DNA of 61,669 nucleotides, the filler included, from Isurus oxyrinchus (Eukaryota): assembly GCA_026770705.1 (NCBI GenBank). It is 7 parts of 7 records of this genome, joined end to end, with 100 filler letters (N's around TTAATTAATTAA, not from the genome) between each part and the next. Parts side by side here need not be neighbours in the genome. Positions count along the whole stretch, not along the records: positions 25,217 to 48,397 come from JANJGN010000016.1; 6 more parts are not named here. One strand, 5' to 3'. Made by a program: the position numbers and the translations under genes. Under the pieces are notes generated by a model. The model did not search any database. It saw nothing but the letters and a program-made list of their open reading frames with translations, and was not told the DNA's origin. Below are positions 33,986 through 48,397 of the stretch, piece after piece (position 1 is the stretch's first letter; each line of letters begins with the position of its first letter).

Positions 33986-34285
33986 CCAGATCTGCAGCTT
34001 CAGTGCTGTGTGAGCAGGACACTGCCAGTCATGGTGAAGGTGACTGTGACCCTCAACTCCTAAACAATGAGATCCTTCCAGACAGGAATAGGCCACATAT
34101 CCAACAGCTAGCAGTTCACCATCTGTAACTGGGTCAGAGAGGTGACAGACTCTGTCAACAGGAGACAGAAAATTCATTGTGTTCCCACTGGACAGAGAGA
34201 AGCAAGCAGGGCTCACATGTGGCATTATCAGGACAGTGAAAATCCCCATGGTGCAGAGTGCCAGTGATTACACACAACGTGGCAG
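33986..34285 (+). pseudogene. Harbinger/HARBI1-type DDE transposase remnant running into the first satellite unit
   Basis: PDLQLQ...TLPVMVKVTVTLNS*TMRSFQTGIGHISNS*QFTICNWVREVTDSV / KFIVFPLDREKQAGLTCGIIRTVKIPMVQSASDYT, colinear with HARBI1-family LPVAVKVT.ALNF...GSFQ...ISQ...REVT..L...FI.FP...RIAGFP.VQGAIDCTH. Confidence 0.85.
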
Positions 34286-37200
34286 TACCAGGAGAGTGGG
34301 TATCCCCATAGTGCAGGGTGCCAGTGACTACACACACACATGGTGTTACCAGGATAGTGATCACCGCCATGGTGCAGGGTGTGATACACTCACACGTGGT
34401 GTTACTAGGATAGTGGCACCCCATGGTGAAGGGTGCCAGTGACCAAACACACATGTGGCGTTACTAGGATAGTGGGTATCTCCATTATGTAAGGTGCCAG
34501 TGACCACACACACACGTGGCGTTACCAGGATAGTGATCACCCTCCTGCTGCAGGGTGCCAGTGACTACACACACGTGGCGTTACCAGGAGAGTGGGTATC
34601 CACATGGTGCAGGGTGCCAGTGACTACACAAACACGTGGCATTACCAGGATAGTGAACACCCCCTTGGTGCAGGGTTCCATTCACTAGACACACACGTGG
34701 CATTACCAGGATAGTGATCACACCCATGGTGCAGGGTTCCAGTGACTACGCACACGTGACATTAATGGGATAGTGGATATCCCCATGGTACAGGGTGCCA
34801 GTGATTACAAACACATGTGGTGTTACCAGGATAATGGGTATCTCAATTATGCAAGGTGCCAGTGACCACACAAACACACATGTGGCGTTACCAGGATAGT
34901 GATCACCCCCATGATGCAGGGTCCAGTGACTACACACACATGTGGCGTTACCAGGATAGTGATCACCTTCCTGCTGCAGGGTGCAAGTGACTACACACAT
35001 ATGGTGTTACCAGGACAGTTATCATTCCCATTGTGTAGGGTTCCATTCACTACACACACACGTGGCACATGTGACATTACAAGGATAGTGGGTATCCCAA
35101 TGGTGCAGGGAGCCAGTGACTACACACACACATGCTGTTACCAGGATAGTGGGTATCCCCATGGTGCAAGGTGCTAGTGACCACACACACGTGTGGTGTT
35201 ACCAGGATAGTGATCATTCCCATGGTGCAGGGTGCCAGTCACTACACATACCTGGTGTTACCAGGATAGTGATCACCCCCATGGTGCAGGATGCCAGTGA
35301 CTGCACAGAAAAGTGGTGTTACCAGGATAGTGATCACCCCATGATGCAGGGTGCCAGAGACTACACAGACACGTTGTGTTACCAGAAGAGTGGGCAGCCC
35401 CATGGTGAAGGGTACCATGGACTAAACAAACACGTGGTGTTACAAGTGTAGTAGGCATCACGATGGTGCTGGGTAACAGTGACGACACACTTACGTGGTA
35501 TAACCAGGATAGTGGGTATCCCCATGGTGCAGGGTGCTGGTGATTAAACGCACATGTGGCGATACCAGGATAGTGGCACCCCCATGGTGCAGGGTGCCAG
35601 TGATTAAACCCACACGTTGTGTTACCAGGATAGGATCACCCACATGGTGCAGGGTGCCAGCGTCAACACACACGTGGCGATACCAATATATTGATCTCAC
35701 CCCAGATGCAGGGTGCCAAAGACTACACACCCGTGGTGTTAGCAGGATAGTGCTCACCCCCATGGTACAGGGTGCCAGTGACTACACACACATGTGGCAT
35801 TACCAGGATAGTGATCACACCAATCGTGCAGGGTTCCAGTTACTACACGCACACGTGGTGTTACCAGGATAGTGATCACCCCAATCATGCAGGGTTCCAG
35901 TTACTACACGCACACGTGATGTTACCAGGATAGTGCTCACCCCCATGGTACAGGGTGCCAGTGACTACACACACATGTGGCATTACCAGGATAGTGATCA
36001 CCCCCATGGTATAGGGTGTCAGTGACTACACACAAACGAGGCAATAACAGGTTAGTTATCACACTCATGGTGCGGGGTTCCAGCGACTATGCACATGTGA
36101 CATTAAAAGGATGGTGGGTATCCCCATGGTGCAGGGTGTCAGTGACTACACACACACGTGTTGTTACCAGGATAGTGATCACAGCCATGTTGCATGGCCA
36201 GTGACCCCACACACACATTGTGTTACCAGGATAGTGATGACCCAATGGTGCAGGGCGCCAGTGACTACACGCACGTGATGTTAGCAGGATAGTGATAACC
36301 CCCATGGGGCTGGGTGCCAGTGACAGCTGACATATGTGGCACTAACAAGATAGTGGGTATCGCCATGGTGCAGGGTGCCAGTGACAACACACACACTTGC
36401 TGTTACCAGGTTAGTTATCATACCCATGGTGCAGGGTTCCAGTGACTACGCACATGTGACATTACAAGGATAGTGGGTATCCCCATGGTGCAGGGTGCTA
36501 GTGACCACAAACACACATTGGGTTACCAGGATAGTGATCTCCCCCATGGTGCAGGGTGCCAGTGACTACACACAGATGTGGTGTTACCAGGATAGTGATA
36601 ACCCCCATGGTGCAGGCTGCAAGTGACCACACACACACGTGGCATTACCAGGATAGTGATCAACCACATGGTTCAGAGTTCCATTCACTACACACACACG
36701 TGGCGTTACCAGGATAGTGATCACCCCCATGATGCAGGGTGCCGGTGACTACACACAAGTGGCGTTACCAGGAGAGTTATCATCCCCATGTTGCAGGGTG
36801 CCAGTCACTACACACAAATGTGGCGTTACCAGGATAGTTATCACTGTGTTGCAGGGTTCCAGTGATTACGCACACGTGGCATTAGCAGGATGGTGGGTAT
36901 CCCCATGGTGCAGGGTGCCTGTGGCTACACACACACGTGGTATTACCAGGATAGTGATCACCCCCATGGTGCAGGGTGCCAGTGACCACACACACGTGGT
37001 ATTACCAGGATAGTGATCACCCCATGGTGCAGGGTGCCAGTCACTACACACACGTGGTATTACCAGGATAGTGATCACCCCCATGGTGCAGGGTACCAGT
37101 CACTACACACACGTGGTGTTACCAGGATAGTGATAACCCACGTGGTACAGGGTGCCAGTCACTACACACACATGGTGTTACCAGGATAGTAGGTATCCAC

Positions 37201-40200
37201 ATGGTGCAGTGTGCCAGCGAGAACACAAACATGTGGCATTACCAGGATAGTGATCGCGCAAACGGTGCAGGGATCCATTCATTAGACACACACGTGGCAT
37301 TACCAGGATAGTGATCAACCCCCTGGTGCAGGGTACCAGTGACCATACACACATGTGGCATTACCAGAATAGTGATCAACCCCCTGGTGCAGGGTGCCAG
37401 TGACTACACACATGTGGTGTTACCAGGATAGTGATCACCCTCATGTAACAGGGTTCCAGCACAAAACACACACCTGGTGTTACCAGAATCGTGATCACCC
37501 CCATGGTGCAGGATGCCTGTGACTACACACACACAAGTGGTGTTACCAGGACAGTGATCACCCCCATGGTGCAGGATGCCTGTGACTACACACACACAAG
37601 TGGTGTTACCAGGACAGTGATCACCCCCATGGTGCAGGGTGCCAGTGATATCACACAGAAGTGGTGTTACCAGGATAGTGATCCCCCATGGTGCAGGGTT
37701 CCAATGACTACGCACACGTGGCATTACCAGGATAGTGAATATCCCCATGGTGCAGGGTGCCAGTGATTACGCACACGTGGTATTAACAGGATAGTGGATA
37801 TCCTAATGGAGCAGGGTGCCAGTGACTACACAAACATGTGGCATTACCAGGATAGTGATCACCCCCTTGGTGCAAGGTGCCAGTGACCACACACACACAC
37901 GTGGTGTTACCAGGATAGTGATCACCCCCTTGGTGCAAGGTGCAAGTGACCACACACACACACGTGGTGTTACCAGGACAGTGGTCACCCCCTTGGTACA
38001 AGGTGCCAGTGACCACACACACACACACGTGGTGTTACCAGGATAGTGATCACCCCCTTGGTGCAAGGTGCCAGTGACTACACACACACACGTGGTGTTA
38101 CCAGGATAGTTATCACACCCATGGTGCAGGGTGCCTGTGACTACACACACACATGGCATTACCAGAACAGTGAACACCCTCATAGAACAGTGTTCCAGTG
38201 ACTGCACACACACGTGGTGCTACCAGGATATTGATCACCTCCATGGTGCAGGATTGGCACCCTGCACCATGCCGATAACAATATCTTGGTATCTATTGAT
38301 CTCTTGATCACACACATGGTGCAGTGTGCCAGTAACTGCACAAACAAGCGGCATTGCCAGGATAGTGATCACACCCTTGGTGCAGGGTGCCAGTAACTGC
38401 ACAAACAAGCGGCATTGCCAGGATAGTGATCAACCGCATGGTGCAGGATTCCATTCACTAGACACACACATGGCATTACCAGGATACTGATCACCCCATG
38501 GTGCAGGGTGCCAGCCACAACACACACACACATTGGGTACCAGGATAGTGATCACCCCCATGGTTGAAGGTGCCAGTAACCACTCACACATATGACACTA
38601 CCAAGATATTGTTATTGCCATGGTGCAGGGTGCCAATGAATACACACACACGTGGCATTACCTTGATAGTGGCACCCCCATGGTGCAGGGTGCCTGTGAC
38701 TATACACATGTGGTGTTACCAGGACAGTTATCACGGTGTAGCAGGGTTCCAGTGACTACTCACACATGGCATTATCAGGATAGTGGGTATCCCCATGGTG
38801 CAGCGTGCCAGTGACTACACAAATGTGTTGTTACCAGGATAGTGATAACCCACATGGTGCAGCGTGCCAGTGACTACACAAACACGCGGCATTGCCAGGA
38901 TAGTGATCAACCGCATGGTTCAGGGTTCCATTCACTAGACACACACACATGGCATTACCAGGATACTGATCACCCCATGGTGCAGGGTGCCAGTGACTAC
39001 ACACACGTGGTGTTACCAGGATAGTGATCATCCCCATGGTGCAGGGTGCCAGTGACTACAAACACACAGTGGGTTACCAGGATAGTGATCACCCCCATGT
39101 TGGAGGTTGCCAGTAACCACTCACACATGTGGCACTACCAAGATATTGTTATCAGCATGGTGCAGGGTGCCAGTGACCACACACAAACGTGGTGTTACCA
39201 GGATAGTTATCACAGCCATGGTGCAGGGTGCCAGTGACCACACACACACGTGGTGTTACCAGGATAGTGATCACACCCATGGAGCAGGGTGCCAGAGACT
39301 AGACACACACACGTTGTGTTAACAGGAGAGTGGGCAGTCCCATGGTGAAGGGTGCCATTGATTAAACACACAGGTGGTGTTACAAGGGTAGTCGGTATCA
39401 CCATGGTGCAGGGTACCAGTGATGACATACATACGTGGTGTAACCAGGATAGTGGCTCCCCCATTGTGCAGTGTTCCAGTCACTACAAACTTACGTGGCA
39501 TTACAAGGATAGTGATCACCCCCATGGTGCCGGATTCCAGTCACTATACACACACGTGGCATTACCAGGATAGTGAACAGCCCCCTGGTGCAGGGTGCCG
39601 GCGACTACACACACATGTGGTGTTATCAGGATAGTGGGGATCCACATGGTGCAGTGTGCCAGTGACTACACACACACCTGGTGTTACCGGGACAGTGATC
39701 ACCCCCATGGTGCAGGTTGCCAGTGACTACACACACAAATGGTGTTACCTGGATAGTGGGGATCCACATGGTACAGTGTGCCAGTGACTACACACATGTA
39801 TTGTTACCAGGATAATGATCACCCCCATGGTGCAGTGTGCCAGTGACTACACACACACCTGGTTGTTACCGGGACAGTGATCACCCCCATGGAGCAGGGT
39901 GTCAGTGATATCACACACCTGGTGTTACCAGGATAGTGATTACCCATGGTGCAGGGTGTCAGTGATATCACACAGAATTGGTGTTACCAGGATAGTGATT
40001 ACCCATGGTACAGGGTTCTAATGACAACGCCCAGGTGGCATTACCAGGATACTGATCACGCCCATGGTGCTGGGTGCCAGTAACTACACAAACACGTGGC
40101 ATTACCAGGATAGTGATAACCCCATGGTGCAGGGTGTTAGTGACTACACAAACACGTGGCATTACCAGGATAGTGGGTGTCCACATTATGCAGGGTGGTA

Positions 40201-43200
40201 GTGACTGCACACACACTTGGCGTTACCAGGAGAATGATCATCCCCATGGTGCAGGTTGCCAGTGACAACACACACACGTGCTGTTACCAGGATAGTGATC
40301 ACCCCCATGATGCAGGGTGCCAGTGACAACACACACACGTGCTGTTACCAGGATAGTGATCACCCCCATGGTGCAGGGTGCTAGTGACTACACACACATG
40401 TGGCATTGCCAGGATAGTGATCACCCCCATCGTGCAGGGTTCCAGTCACTACACGCACACGTGGCGTTACGAGGATAGTGCTCACCCTCATGGTGTAGGG
40501 TGTCAGTGACTACACACAAACGAGGCAATAACAGGTTAGTTATCACACCCATGGTGCAGGGGTCCAGTGACTATGCAAGTGTGACATTACGAGATTAGTG
40601 GGTATCCCCCATGGTGCAGGGAGCCAGTGTCCACACACACACACGTGATGTTACCAGGATGGTGGGTATCCCGATGGTGCGGGGTGCTAGTGACCACACA
40701 CACGTGGTGTTACCAGGATAGTGGGTATCCGCATGGTGCAGGCTGACAGTGACTACCCGCAAACGTGGCATTACCAGGATACTGATCACCCCCATGGTGC
40801 AGGGTGCCAATGACAATGCACACGTGGTGTTACCAGGAGAGTGATCATCCCCATGGTGCAGGGTGCCAGTGACTACAAACACACAGTGGGTTACCAGGAT
40901 AGTGATCACCCCCATGTTGGAAGTTACCAGTAACCACTCACACATGTGGCACTACCAAGATATTGTTATCAGCATGGTGCAGGGTGCCAGTGACCACACA
41001 CACACGTGGTGTTACCAGGATAGTGATCACACCCATGGAGAAGGGTGCCAGAGACTAGACACACACACGTTGTGTTAACAGGAGAGTGGGCAGTCCCATG
41101 GTGAAGGGTGCCATTGATTAAACACACAGGTGGTGTTACAAGGGTAGTCGGTATCACCATGGTGCAGGGTACCAGTGACGACATACATACGGGGTGTAAC
41201 CAGGATGGTGGCTCCCCTATTGTGCATTGTTCCAGTCACTACAAACATACGTGGCGTTACAAGGATAGTGATCACCCCCATGGTGCCGGATTCCAGTCAC
41301 TACACACACACGTGGCATTACCAGGATAGTGAACAGCCCCCTGGTGCAGGGTGCCGGCGACTACACACACATGTGGTGTTATCAGGATAGTGGGGATCCA
41401 CATGGTGCAGTGTGCCAGTGACTACACACACACCTGGTGTTACCGGGACAGTGATCACCCCCATGGAGCAGGGTGTCAGTGATATCACACACCTGGTGTT
41501 ACCAGGATAGTGTCTCCCCCATGGAGCAGGGTGTCAGTGATATCACACAGAATTGGTGTTACCAGGATAGTGATTACCCATGGTACAGGGTTCTAATGAC
41601 AACGCCCAGGTGGCATTACCAGGATACTGATCACGCCCATGGTGCTGGGTGCCAGTAACTACACAAACACGTGGCATTACCAGGATAGTGATAACCCCAT
41701 GGTGCAGGGTGCTAGTGACTACACAAACACGTGGCATTACCAGGATAGTGGGTGTCCACATTATGCAGGGTGGTAGTGACTGCACACACACTTGGCGTTA
41801 CCATGAGAATGATCACCCCCATGATGCAGGGTGCTAGTGACAACACACACACGTGCTGTTACCAGGATAGTGATCACCCCCATGATGCAGGGTGCCAGTG
41901 ACAACACACACACGTGCTGTTACCAGGATAGTGATCACCCCCATGGTGCAGGGTGCGAGTGACTACACACACATGTGGTGTTACCAGGATAGTGATCACC
42001 CCCATCGTGCAGGGTTCCAGTCACTACGCACACGTGGCGTTAACAGGATAGTGAATATCCCCATGGTGCAGGGTGCCGGTGACTACACACATGTGTTGTT
42101 ACCAGGATAGTGATAACCCACATGGTGCAGGGTGCCAGTGACTACACAAACACGCGGCATTGCCAGGGTAGTGATCAACCTCATGGTTCAGGGTTCCATT
42201 CACTAGACACACACACGGGATTACCAGGATACTGATCACCCCCATGGTGCAGGGTGCCAGTGACAACACACACACGTGCTGTTACCAGGATAGTGATCAC
42301 CCCCATGGTGCAGGGTGCTAGTGACTACACACACATATGGCGTTACCAGGATAGTGATCACCCCCATGGTGCAGAGTTCCAGTCACTACACGCACACGTG
42401 GCGTTACGAGGATAGTGATCGCCCCCATCTTGCAGGGTGCCAGTGACAACACACACACGTGCTGTTACCAGGATAGTGATCACCCCCATCGTGCAGGGTT
42501 CCAGTCACTACACGCACACGTGGCGTTACGAGGATAGTGCTCACCCTCATGGTGTAGGGTGTCAGTGACTACACACAAACGAGGCAATAACAGGTTAGTT
42601 ATCACACCCATTGTGCAGGGTGCCAGTGACTACAAACACACAGTGGGTTACCAGGATAGTGATCACCCTCATGTTGGAGGTTGCCAGTGACTACAAACAC
42701 ATGTGGCACTACCAAGATATTGTTATCACCATGCTGCAGGGTGCCAGTGACCACACACATATGTGGCGTTACCTTGATAGTGGCACCCCCATGGTGCAGG
42801 CTGCCAGTGACTACACACGTGTGGCATTAGCAGGATAGTGATAACCCCCATGGTGCAGGGTCATAGTGGCAACTCACATATGTGGCACAGACAAGAAAGT
42901 GGGTATCACCATGGTGCAGGGTGCCAGTGACCACACACACATGGTGTTACCAGGATAGTTATCACACCCATGGTGCAGGGAGCCAGCGACTACACACATG
43001 CAGTGTTACCAGGATAGTGGCATCTCCAAGGTGCCAGTGATTAAACACACACGTGGCGTTACCAGGATATTGATCTCACCCCTGGTGCAGGGTGCCAGTG
43101 ACTACACACACGTGGCGTTACAAGGATAGTGATCACCCCCATGGTGCCGGATTCCAGTCACTACACACACACGTGGCATTACCACGATAGTGAACAGCCC

Positions 43201-46200
43201 CCTGGTGCAGGGAGCCAATGACTACACACACGTGGTATTACCAGGATAGCGCTCACCCCCATGGCACAGGGTGCCCGTGACTACACACATTTGTGGCATT
43301 ACCAGGATAGTGATCACACCAATCGTGCAGGGTTCCAATCACTACACACACACACCTGGCGTTACCAGGATAGTGATCACCCCCATGGTATAGGGTGTCA
43401 GTGACCACACACAAACGAGGCAATAGTAGGTTAGTTATCACACCCATGGTGCAGGGTTCCAGTGACTACGCACATGTGACATTACAAGGATAGTGGGTAT
43501 CCCCATGGTGCAGGATCCAGTGACTAAACACACACGTTGTGTTACCAAGGTAGTCAGTATCACCATGGTGCAGGGTACCAGTGATGACATACATATGTGG
43601 TGTAACCAGGATAGTGGCTCCCCCATTGTGCATTGTTCCAGTCACTACAAACATACGTGGCGTTACAAAGATAGTGATCGCCCCCATGGTGCCGGATTCC
43701 AGTCACTACACACACACGTGGCATTACCAGGATAGTAAACAACCCCCTGGTGCAGGGAGCCAATGACTACACACATGTGGTGTTACCAGGATAGTGATCA
43801 CCCTCATGGTGCAGGATGCCTGTGATGACACACACATGTGGTGATACCAGGATTATGGGTATCCCCATGGTGCAGTGTGTCAGTCACTACACACACACGT
43901 GGCGTTACCAGGATAGTGATCACCACCATAGAGAAGGGTGCCAGTGACTACACACACACATGGTGTTACCAGGATAGTGATAACCCCCATGGTGCAGTGT
44001 GCCAGTCACTACACACACGTTGTGTTACCAGGATAGTGATCACCCCCATGGAGCAGTGTGCCAGTCACTACACACACATTGTGTTACCAGGATAGTGATC
44101 ACCCCCATGGTGCAGGGTGCCAGTGACTGCAAAAACACGTGGCATTACCAGGATAGTGATCACCCCTATGGTGCAGGGTGCCAGTGACTACACACACGAG
44201 GTATTACCAGGAGACTGATCATCCCCATGGTGCAGAGTGCCAGTGACTACAAACACCCATTGGGTTACCAGGATAGTGAACACCCCCATGGTGGAGGGTG
44301 CCAGTATCCACTCATATATGTGGCACTACCAAGATATTGTTATCACCATGGTACCAATGACTACACACCTATGTGGCGTTACCAGGATAGTGGCACGCCC
44401 ATGGTGCAGGTTGCCAGTGACTACACACACATGTTGCAATAGCAGGATAGTGATAACCCCCATGGTGCAGGGTCAGAGAGGCAACTCACATATGTGGCAC
44501 TAACAAGATAGTGGGTATCGCCATGGTGCAGGATGCCAGTGACCACACACACACGTAGCAATGCCATGGGAGTGATCACCACCATGGTGAAGGGTGCCAG
44601 AGATTACACACACGTTGTGTTACCAGGAGACTGGGCACCCTCTTGGTGAAGGGTGTCATTGAGTAAATACACACATGGTGTTACATGTGTAGTGGGTATC
44701 ACCATGGTGCAGGTTACCAGCGACGACATACATACATGGTATAACCAGGATAGTGGCTCCCCCATTGTGCATTGTTCCAGTCACTACAAACATACGTGGC
44801 ATTACAAAGATAGTGATCACCCCCATGGTGCCGGATTCCAGTCACTACACACACACGTGGCATTACCAGGAAAGTGAACAGCCCCCTGGTGCAGGGAGCC
44901 AATGACTACACACATGTGGTGTTACCAGGATAGTGATCACCCTCATGGTGCAGGATGCCTGTGATGACACACACATGTGGTGATACCAGGATTGTGGGTA
45001 TCCCCATGGTGCAGTGTGTCAGTCACTACACACACACGTGGCGTTACCAGGATAGTGATCACACCCTTGGTGCAGGGTGCTAGTGACCACACACACACGT
45101 GGCATTACCATGAGAGTGATCACCACCATAGAGAAGGGTGCCAGTGACTACACACACACATGGTGTTACCAGGATAGTGATAACCCCCATGGTGCAGTGT
45201 GCCAGTCACTACACACACGTTGTGTTACCAGGATAGTGATCACCCCCATGGAGCAGTGTGCCAGTCACTACACATACATTGTGTTACCAGGATAGTGATC
45301 ACCCCCATGGTGCAGGGTGCCAGTGACTGCAAAAACACGTGGCATTACCAGGATAGTGATCACCCCTATGGTGCCGGGTGCCAGTGACTACACACACGAG
45401 GTGTTACCAGGAGACTGATCATCCCCATGGTGCAGAGTGCCAGTGACTACAAACACCCATTGGGTTACCAGGATAGTGAACACCCCCATGGTGGAGGGTG
45501 CCAGTATCCACTCATATATGTGGCACTACCAAGATATTGTTATCACCATGGTGCCAATGACTACACACCTATGTGGCGTTACCAGGATAGTGGCACGCCC
45601 ATGGTGCAGGTTGCCAGTGACTACACACACATGTTGCAATAGCAGGATAGTGATAACCCCCATGGTGCAGGGTCAGAGAGGCAACTCACATATGTGGCAC
45701 TAACAAGATAGTGGGTATCGCCATGGTGCAGGATGCCAGTGACCACACACACACGTAGCAATGCCATGGGAGTGATCACCACCATGGTGAAGGGTGCCAG
45801 AGATTACACACACGTTGTGTTACCAGGAGACTGGGCACCCTCTTGGTGAAGGGTGTCATTGAGTAAATACACACATGGTGTTACATGTGTAGTGGGTATC
45901 ACCATGGTGCAGGTTACCAGCGACGACATACATACATGGTATAACCAGGATAGTGGCTCCCCCATTGTGCATTGTTCCAGTCACTACAAACATACGTGGC
46001 ATTACAAAGATAGTGATCACCCCCATGGTGCCGGATTCCAGTCACTACACACACACGTGGCATTACCAGGATAGTGAACAGCCCCCTGGTGCAGGGAGCC
46101 AATGACTACACACATGTGGTGTTACCAGGATAGTGATCACCCTCATGGTGCAGGATGCCTGTGATGACACACACATGTGGTGATACCAGGATTGTGGGTA

Positions 46201-48397
46201 TCCGCATGGTGCAGTGTGTCAGTCACTACACACACACGTGGCGTTACCAGGATAGTGATCACACCCTTGGTGCAGGGTGCTAGTGACCACACACACATGT
46301 GGCATTACCATGAGAGTGATCACCACCATAGAGAAGGGTGCCAGTGACTACACACACACATGGTGTTACCAGGATAGTGATCACCCCCATGGTGCATTGT
46401 GCCAGTCACTACACACATGTTGTGTTACCAGGATAGTGATCACCCCCATGGTGCAGGGTGCCAGTGACTGCAAAAACACGTGGCATTACCAGGATAGTGA
46501 TCACCCCTATGGTGCAGGGTGCCAGTGATTACATACACGAGGTGTTACCAGGAGACTGATCATCCCCATGGTGCAGGGTGCCAGTGACTACAAACACCCA
46601 TTGGGTGAAGGGTGTCATTGAGTAAATACACACATGGTGTTACATGTGTAGTGGGTATCACCATGGTGCAGGTTACCAGTGACGACATACATACATGGTA
46701 TAACCAGGATAGTGGCACCCTCATTGTGCAGTGTTCCAGTCACTACAAACATACGTGGCGTTACAAGGATAGTGATCACCCCCATGGTGCCGGATTCCAG
46801 TCACTATACACACACGTGGCATTACCAGGATAGTGAACAGCCCCCTGGTGCAGGGTGCCTGTGACTACACACAAGTGGTGATACCAGGATAGTGGGTATC
46901 CAAATGGTGCAGTGTGCCAGTGACTATACACATGTGGTGTTACCAGGATAGTTATCACGGTGTAGCAGGGTTCCAGTGGCTTCTCACACGTGGCATTACC
47001 AGGATAGTGATCACCCCCATGGTGCAGCGTGCCAGTGACTACACACACATGTGGCATTACTAGGATTGTGATCAACCCCCTGGTGCAGGGTGCCAGTGAC
47101 TACACACGCGTGTTACAAGGATAGCGATCACCCGCATGGTGCAGGGTGCCAGTGACTACACACAAACGTGGCGATACCGGGATAGTGATCTCCCCCATGG
47201 TGCAGGGTGCCAGAGACTACACACATATGTTGTGTTACCAGGAGAGTGTGTAGCCCCATGGTGAAGGGTGCTGTGGACTAAACAAACAGGTGGTATTACA
47301 AGTGTAGTGGGTATAACCATGATGCAGGGTACCAGTGATGCCACACATACGTGGTGTAACCAGGATAGTGTATATCCCCATGGTGCAGGGTACTAGTGAC
47401 CACACACACATGTGGCTTAACCAGGATAGTGGCACCCCCATGGTGCAGGGTGCCAGCGTCAACACACACATGACGTTACCAGGATATTGATCTCACCTCT
47501 GGTGCAGGGTGCCAGTCACTACACACACACACATGGTGTTACCAGGATAGTGATCACCCTCATGGTGCAGGGTGCCAGTCACTACACACAAACGCGGCAA
47601 TAATAGGTTTGTTATCACACTCATGGTGCAGGGATCCTGTGACTAAGCAGCTGTGATATTACAAGGATGGTGGGTATCCCCATGGTGCAGGGTGCCAGAG
47701 ACTAGACACACACACGTTGTGTTACCAGGAGAGTGGGCAGTCCCATGGTGAAGGGTGCCATTGATTAAACACACAGGTGGTGTTACAAGGGTAGTCAGTA
47801 TTACCATGGTAATACTGGTACCAGGGTACCAGTGACGACATACATACGGGGTGTAACCAGGATGGTGGCTCCCCCATTGTGCATTGTTCCAGTCACTACA
47901 AACATACGTGGCATTACAAGGATAGTGATCACCCCCATGGTGCCGGATTCCAGTCACTACACACACACGTGGCATTACCAGGATAGTGAACAGCCCCCTG
48001 GTCCTGGGAGCCAGTGACTACACACATGTGGAGATACCAGGATAGTGGGTATCCACATGGTGCAGGGTGCCAGTGAAAACACACAGAAGTGATGTTACCA
48101 GGATAGTGATCACCCTCATGTGCAGGGTTCCAGTGACTACACACACGTGGCATTAACAGGATAGTGAATATCCCCATGGTGCAGGATGCAAGTGACTACA
48201 CACACACGTGGTGTTACGAGGATAGTGGGTATCTCCATTATGCAAGGTGCCAGTGACCACACGCACACACGTGGTTTTACCAGGATAGTGATCACACCCT
48301 TGGTGCAGCGTGTCAGTGATATCACACAGAAGTGGTGTTACCAGGATAGTGGCACCCCCATGGTGATGGGTTCCAGTAACTACACACGTGTGGCGTT
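34215..48397. repeat. ~14-kb satellite, ~60-bp unit CCATGGTGCAGGGTGCCAGTGACTACACACACGTGGTGTTACCAGGATAGTGATCACCCC, with higher-order repeats
   Basis: Direct tandem periodicity to the contig end; a 1200-bp higher-order duplication is visible. Confidence 0.97.

Follow-up and report, generated by a model that had tools for sequence, protein, structure and literature searches.

A tandem array in the Isurus oxyrinchus genome that probably arose in place from a Harbinger transposase remnant

The stretch of DNA described here (the window) comprises 61,669 nucleotides, filler included, from Isurus oxyrinchus (NCBI GenBank assembly GCA_026770705.1), in which 7 parts of 7 records are joined end to end with 100 filler letters between each part and the next. 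The locus of interest lies in the 23-kb piece taken from JANJGN010000016.1 (positions 25,217 to 48,397; all positions count along the window). Here, a decayed remnant of a HARBI1-like transposase of the PIF/Harbinger superfamily is followed by a long tandem array of short monomers, the first of which doubles as the next segment of the transposase gene (Table 1). The features of this locus suggest that a short coding segment holding a catalytic motif of the transposase was amplified at its own site.

Table 1. Features of the transposase remnant and the adjoining array, in window positions.
Feature	Coordinates	Strand	Basis and remarks
Decayed HARBI1-like Harbinger transposase remnant, N-terminal and helix-turn-helix part	33884..34171	+	profile hidden Markov model (HMM), tblastn; frame of 33986
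Continuation of the remnant after the frameshift	34172..34213	+	frame of 33987; (K)FIVFPLDREKQAGL, linker just before the catalytic domain
Unit 1, also native transposase segment	34214..34276	+	codons for ...TCGIIRTVKIPMVQSASDYTQ; family positions ~141-161, including the Asp of G-A-I-D-C-T-H
Tandem array, at least 235 monomers, modal length 61 bp	34214..48397	+	Tandem Repeats Finder, nhmmer; ends at piece edge
Recent segmental duplication in the array, lag 1200 bp (~20 units)	43915..46428	+	1086 shared 24-mers; identical open reading frames (ORFs) 1200 bp apart
Further multi-unit duplications, lags 1575, 1756 and 1817 bp	39023..42000	+	shared 24-mers; near-identical ORFs

Frame 1 from 33986 translates as PDLQLQCCVSRTLPVMVKVTVTLNS, stop, TMRSFQTGIGHISNS, stop, QFTICNWVREVTDSVNRRQK, the two in-frame stops falling at 34061-34063 and 34109-34111. 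Written as a continuous reading, the flank in this frame is ...RTLPVMVKVTVTLNS-stop-TMRSFQ...REVTDSVNRRQK. A frameshift of 1 nt follows at 34172, after which frame 2 reads FIVFPLDREKQAGLTCGIIRTVKIPMVQSASDYTQ into unit 1 of the array. The ORF across this junction gave no match in a search of PDB sequences, no candidate in a word-indexed protein search and no usable match in the ESM Atlas. Since direct searches failed, a degenerate DNA bait for the family motif, used only to fetch sequences, was employed. The bait matched 120 loci in metagenome contigs and none in viral contigs, and ORFs from these loci were recognized by the Pfam DDE_Tnp_4 model at 3e-38, 3.3e-25 and 4.9e-33. One of them, L051, retrieved 120 proteins, mostly named 'putative nuclease HARBI1' by NCBI or UniRef. 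The set retrieved with a second ORF, L037, is more diverse and consists mainly of unnamed metagenome proteins, together with 'putative nuclease HARBI1' entries from invertebrates, fish and amphibians. The first family profile combines 63 full-length teleost proteins with 57 metagenome ORFs; a control profile contains homology-found teleost proteins only, with the bait-selected ORFs excluded.

Scored as a single sequence in frame 1, the flank (33980-34171) matches positions 62-125 of the family profile with 23.8 bits (E-value, E, of 8.7e-10). When the piece is scanned in all six frames, the flank (21.9 bits, E 7.8e-7) gives the one match that is significant, and the profile beyond position 165 has no match anywhere in the piece. 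Homology reaches upstream to about 33884, with a 5-residue insertion, in tblastn comparisons with metagenome Harbinger ORFs. An exon boundary at 33980-33984, where a splice-acceptor-like 'ttcag' occurs, was rejected, as homology in the same frame continues upstream of it. About 100 of the roughly 350 codons of the transposase are present, carrying two stops and one frameshift. Judged by its sequence, the flank is a truncated HARBI1-like transposase remnant, not a gene. A preliminary description of this DNA had already read a decayed Harbinger transposase here; its translated strings match those obtained now, and the profile score agrees with the assignment.

The remnant runs into the array without loss of alignment to the family. 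The segment FIVFPLDREKQAGL, which lies behind the frameshift, adds 13.3 bits to the profile score by itself. When frame 1 and frame 2 are joined with an X at the frameshift, the joined read scores 39.6 bits, against 23.8 before, and aligns without gaps from HMM position 63 to 158, through unit 1 to the Asp; with the teleost-only profile it scores 36.5 bits, again gap-free. Single proteins give the same picture in blastp: P0079, P0027, P0211 and the ORF at 2783-3286 (+) of locus L027 align without gaps over 97-98 residues at 27-33% identity. The distance from the Pro of F-I-V-F-P to the residue before the Pro of (K)I-P-M-V is 18 residues, the spacing found in 176 of 223 family members (79%). 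Units 1 and 2, spaced 60 apart, share 84% identity. A satellite joined in random phase would hit this register about once in 60 cases; the junction is therefore not of the insertion type. The preliminary description had named such a junction, combined with a satellite widespread elsewhere without a transposase flank, as an observation that would speak against it, and had expected the Harbinger catalytic motif to continue at exactly this point. The second expectation agrees with the gap-free junction and the spacing. Its statement that the frame runs 'without a break' into the first unit holds for colinearity and fails for the reading frame.

The array itself consists of plus-strand monomers only. 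Tandem Repeats Finder reports a period of 61 over 34214-46597 (205 copies, 76% matches) and again over 46604-48387 (29.4 copies), and an nhmmer search of the piece with the unit finds 235 monomers from 34228 to 48394. The same search finds no monomer upstream of 34200, in the 9 kb of the piece on that side. Units are 61 nt (126 units), 59 nt (47), 60 nt (22) or 63 nt (12) long, and this variation is confined to a (CA)n tract near the unit boundary. There are no N's within the array, which reaches the piece edge at 48397; 235 units and 14.2 kb are therefore minimum figures, and they agree with the amplification of about 235-fold over 14.2 kb given earlier. The consensus peptide is T-R-I-V-(I 134/G 45)-(T 123/I 55)-P-M-V-Q-G-A-S-D-Y-T-H. 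The core of the monomer translation in the preliminary description corresponds to this consensus; its 'HVAL' tail is confined to the 59-nt units, the same bases giving HTWC in the 61-nt majority. According to the consensus, the palindromes CACGTG (an E-box-like hexamer) and CCATGG occur in most units from 34214 to 48397.

The monomer also resembles the catalytic-motif segment of the family independently of the junction. Aligned ungapped in the 59-nt register, the consensus peptide has its best score among 353 offsets at the colinear one, 145: 18.1 bits, against 6.7 bits for the runner-up. The conserved residues that it matches are P, V, G, A, D, T, H and V. This score was compared with those of dinucleotide-preserving shuffles of the unit, read in six frames against every offset: 4 of 20,000 shuffles attain it at some offset, and none at offset 145 (P about 2e-4 anywhere and below 5e-5 at the colinear offset). 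With the teleost-only profile, the consensus peptide scores 18.2 bits and the G-I / V-A-L variant 23.9 bits. Weak profile matches within the array, in the six-frame scan, are all on the plus strand and all fall in HMM positions 139-165.

An unrelated 61-bp satellite that lies beside a transposase remnant and resembles it by chance could account for the 2-5 bits that isolated monomers score in HMMER local mode, for the silence of Pfam on the separate pieces and for the shortness of the motif match. It is exceedingly improbable in view of the shuffle results, the rank of the colinear offset in two profiles, the gap-free junction with family spacing, and the restriction of the weak array matches to one strand and the same 25 profile positions. 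Homology between monomer and transposase is thus the better account. The Asp of G-A-I-D-C-T-H is, as established for the family, the first residue of the DDE triad. In real family members, the Pfam DDE_Tnp_4 model begins at the I-D of this motif, which is consistent with that role. The alignments support the identification of the monomer, at the level of sequence, as about 20 codons holding the G-A-I-D-C-T-H motif, as had been proposed for it. The array consensus retains the family Gly and His, whereas unit 1 has Ser and Gln instead. Such a difference would follow from the descent of every unit, unit 1 as well, from an ancestor that was less decayed.

Part of the region 33300-34700 is present in 20 public sequencing runs with two organism labels, from seven studies. 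A contig of organism A spans the junction (33904-34344) with 1 difference, and contigs of organism B from two studies span it with 11 differences (33952-34358) and 10 differences (33975-34320). Thus, the parent is still attached to the array at the proximal junction, as had been described, and it is so in contigs under both labels. An assembly artefact, in which the array or its length stems from mis-assembly of repeats, is conceivable for a long array, a class of sequence prone to collapse and expansion, and for one in which the piece ends. It is nonetheless hardly credible here: short-read contigs from four runs and two organism labels reproduce the junction and the first units, and a pairwise identity of 74% lets units be assembled uniquely, leaving only the near-identical 1.2-kb duplication at risk. 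A few contigs of runs X1 and X5 join the last bases of the flank, at 34209, to 34606, in a unit 396 bp further into the array.

Summed contig depths, which are not copy numbers, are low for the flank and only a few-fold higher for the array, while fragments of long interspersed nuclear elements (LINEs) at 32900-33200 reach 1e5-1e6. This hints that the array is not a major genome-wide satellite and that the flank is low-copy. These depths also bear on an alternative that places the birth of the satellite in a different copy of this Harbinger family, or that takes it for a dispersed tandem repeat from the interior of a non-autonomous derivative. In that case several such arrays would exist, this being one of them, or recombination or gene conversion through the homologous segment would have brought the array here. 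Internal tandem repeats of many transposons do seed dispersed satellite-like arrays (PMC7492417; PMC4079207; reviewed in PMC9659126), the array is several-fold deeper than the flank, a few contigs carry the joint of 34209 to 34606, and the far end of the array is unseen. On the other hand, recombination would have had to recreate both the register of the family and its 18-residue spacing precisely, and the piece holds nothing monomer-like in the 9 kb upstream. The flank appears low-copy, the depth of the satellite is three to four orders of magnitude below that of the nearby LINE fragments, and its excess over the flank can be explained by the 235 or more diverged units within the array itself. 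A dispersed origin of this kind is therefore unlikely, and the array is better explained by amplification where it now stands.

The units are old and appear to have drifted freely. Mean identity to the consensus is 0.84 and mean pairwise identity 0.74, both flat along the array; neighbouring units are scarcely more similar than distant ones, and unit 1 (0.82 to the consensus) differs little from the average unit. This pattern points to an old primary amplification without later homogenisation. Organisms A and B diverge by about 3% at the junction, far below the 16% that separates units from the consensus, so the primary amplification would long predate their split, assuming that the labels stand for different species. 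Later growth is visible in a count of 24-mer lags, by which the segmental duplications of Table 1 were found. Conservation hardly differs between first, second and third codon positions (0.843, 0.847 and 0.869, respectively), and the modal period of 61 is not a multiple of 3, so there is no coding constraint. A gene for a tandem-repeat protein was rejected on these two grounds and because the longest plus-strand ORF has 112 aa. The array is non-coding and has no demonstrated function.

A role as a source of small RNAs had also been raised for this array. Hundreds of sense copies of a conserved segment, at a locus kept under two organism labels, make it plausible that the array serves as a source of PIWI-interacting or small interfering RNAs against the region of Harbinger mRNAs that encodes the conserved catalytic motif. 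Were the array maintained and transcribed as a trap, with small RNAs directed at the first catalytic motif, the most conserved part of Harbinger transposase mRNAs, a host could silence the whole family from a single amplified segment. Contigs of the one run guessed to be RNA lend this no support: they cover 33572-33755, have zero depth over 33824-34516, which includes the junction, and do not exceed a depth of 2.3 on the array. Moreover, the units, which differ from one another by about 26%, evolve free of constraint and all lie on one strand, such that double-stranded RNA would need antisense transcription, and the DNA strand has no special fold (z 0.38). Such a function, whether as small-RNA source or as trap, is very doubtful, and neutral drift of a non-coding array is favoured.

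Origin in place, the mechanism of the first duplication and the relative timing of events are inferred; the proposed course is as follows. At about 33884-34276 lies a copy of a HARBI1-like PIF/Harbinger DNA transposon that is old and non-functional. Some 59-61 nt of its transposase gene, which encode the end of the linker and the opening of the DDE_Tnp_4 catalytic domain, (F)P-x-V-x-G-A-I-D-C-T-H, would have been duplicated in tandem at their own site. The copies would then have been amplified to hundreds, probably via replication slippage or unequal exchange, with slippage of (CA)n at the unit boundary giving rise to the variants of 59, 60, 61 and 63 nt. An ancient primary amplification, to judge by the roughly 16% distance of units from the consensus, would have been followed by neutral drift and, in the distal half, by regrowth through multi-unit duplications of 1.2-1.8 kb. 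Single-stranded DNA folding of three units revealed no structure beyond that of shuffles (z 0.38), and slippage driven by hairpins is thus without support.

Two short stretches of similar sequence in the gene, lying some 59 nt from each other at codons ~141-144 and ~160-164, may have seeded the first duplication. The preliminary description had proposed seeding by microhomology between 34214-34226 and the unit end. These 13 nt are the start of unit 1, so their likeness to later units is the periodicity itself, and this part of the proposal falls away. Scored as native transposase, they occupy variable profile positions (-1 to -4 bits) and are uninformative. The second site, at the unit boundary, holds up moderately. 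After D-Y-T, the 59-nt register reads H-V-A-L or H-V-V-L (8.8 or 7.15 bits), which continues the family motif T-H-[VI]-A-[IL]; a random 12-mer of array composition reaches 7 bits with P of about 5e-4, or about 1.5e-3 over three registers. The unit boundary is therefore similar to the upstream site (12 of 13 nt) as well as to the expected continuation of the gene, a double likeness that is predicted by duplication between two similar sites about 59 nt apart. The chance that the first duplication occurred in this way is put at somewhat better than even.

Several observations weigh against an origin in place or against the homology that underlies it. The claim of homology rests on a custom profile and on colinearity, Pfam and phmmer having found no transposase. 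Pfam, which the preliminary description had proposed as a check with the DDE_Tnp_4 model, gave no relevant match and no DDE_Tnp_4 on six stop-free pieces of flank and array. Only about the first 10 positions of that model are present in the piece, and Pfam is blind to the segment because the segment stops about 10 residues into the domain. Run with the 46-aa peptide of the junction on 1.84 billion proteins, phmmer gave 3 matches, all to repeat proteins and none to a transposase. The best of them, P0001 (1806 aa, E 1.5e-11 summed over 5 repeats), was judged to be a chance match inflated by repetition and was rejected as a relative. It is a predicted protein of long tandem repeats in which only a motif of 13-20 aa, EHRAGITCGVVRT, repeated many times, resembles EKQAGLTCGIIRT of the junction, and the Harbinger profile does not match it. 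Half of the first profile comes from ORFs found with the motif bait, and the teleost control set was itself found through one bait-derived query. Without its last four residues, the monomer peptide scores 11.0 bits against 9.6 at the next-best offset, so the monomer evidence is strongest jointly with the junction. The copy number of the monomer elsewhere in the genome is judged from contig depths, a poor proxy, and the joint of 34209 to 34606 could reflect an allele of different array length, a second locus or ambiguous alignment within repeats. Finally, the piece stops before the array does, and a resumption of the transposase at the distal end is unseen; amplification in place, as first proposed, is accordingly borne out for the proximal side, where the junction is colinear and in register. 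Weighing these points, we put the probability that the array arose in place from the adjoining Harbinger transposase copy at about 0.75.

The remainder of the piece holds other repeats and retroelement debris. At 31548-32078 lies an unrelated tandem repeat, C-rich on the plus strand, with a 36-bp unit (14.7 copies, 91% matches) and a 144-bp higher-order unit (3.7 copies, 96%). Decayed LINE-like reverse-transcriptase fragments are found on the minus strand at 25664-26131 and 29401-30124 (Pfam RVT_1, 1.4e-12 and 4.6e-9 to 2e-5, respectively), and the extremely abundant LINE fragments at 32900-33200 are related to them. An ORF with a GIY-YIG endonuclease motif (27963-28292, minus strand; Pfam PF01541, 2.7e-5) suggests the remnant of a Penelope-like retroelement. 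A (GA)15 microsatellite at 33409-33438 marks the place where depth falls from the high-copy LINE to the low-copy stretch with the remnant, and the Harbinger copy may have its 5' limit close by.

The beginnings of satellites are rarely observable because the first unit and its unique context are usually lost. At this locus, the parent gene, a first unit in native register and a mature array stand in one continuous stretch. The locus can thus be used to test models of the first duplication, microhomology versus non-homologous, and to date primary amplification against later segmental growth. There is also a practical side for repeat annotation: translated arrays of this kind match the DDE_Tnp_4 motif spuriously hundreds of times, so that transposase fragments can be overcounted.

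HARBI1-like PIF/Harbinger transposases (DDE_Tnp_4, PF13359) are the parent family, and flank and unit 1 align to them gap-free over profile positions 62-161, with 27-33% identity to individual fish proteins; unlike these proteins, the piece contains no more of the catalytic domain than its first ~10 residues. Complete Harbinger elements have terminal inverted repeats, a 3-bp target-site duplication and a second, Myb-like ORF (PMC9179366). Satellites derived from coding parts of mobile elements include PROsat and Pvc20 (L1 ORF2), chicken HinfI (CR1 ORF2) and rye E3900 (gag) (PMC9659126). As in these cases, a short internal coding segment of a mobile element has become the monomer of a non-coding array; their parents are retrotransposons and their junctions are generally not in register, whereas here the parent is a class II Harbinger element and unit 1 is colinear with it. 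Among DNA transposons, the CficCl-61-40 satellite of Chenopodium derives from the CACTA-like element Jozin, with the Tnp2 transposase as source region (PMC9659126, Table 1). It is likewise a satellite or minisatellite born in a DNA transposon, in or near the transposase gene. It differs in its CACTA parent, its plant host and its standing as a major genome component, as opposed to the apparently low-copy PIF/Harbinger array. The foldback element Tetris of Drosophila virilis and Helentron/DINE-1 elements also show DNA transposons supplying building blocks for satellites that expand by unequal exchange (PMC4079207; PMC7492417). Their repeats are non-coding, already tandem and dispersed by transposition, in contrast to the unique coding segment at apparently one locus described here. 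Full-text literature searches found no report of a Harbinger-derived satellite and no paper containing the monomer sequence (three substrings), and the word 'Harbinger' is absent from the 2022 review of transposon-derived satellites (PMC9659126). With no Harbinger case in that review, the present locus would add PIF/Harbinger to the superfamilies that seed satellites from coding sequence. Transposon-derived satellites as such are already known, and what is unusual here is that parent and array are still in register.

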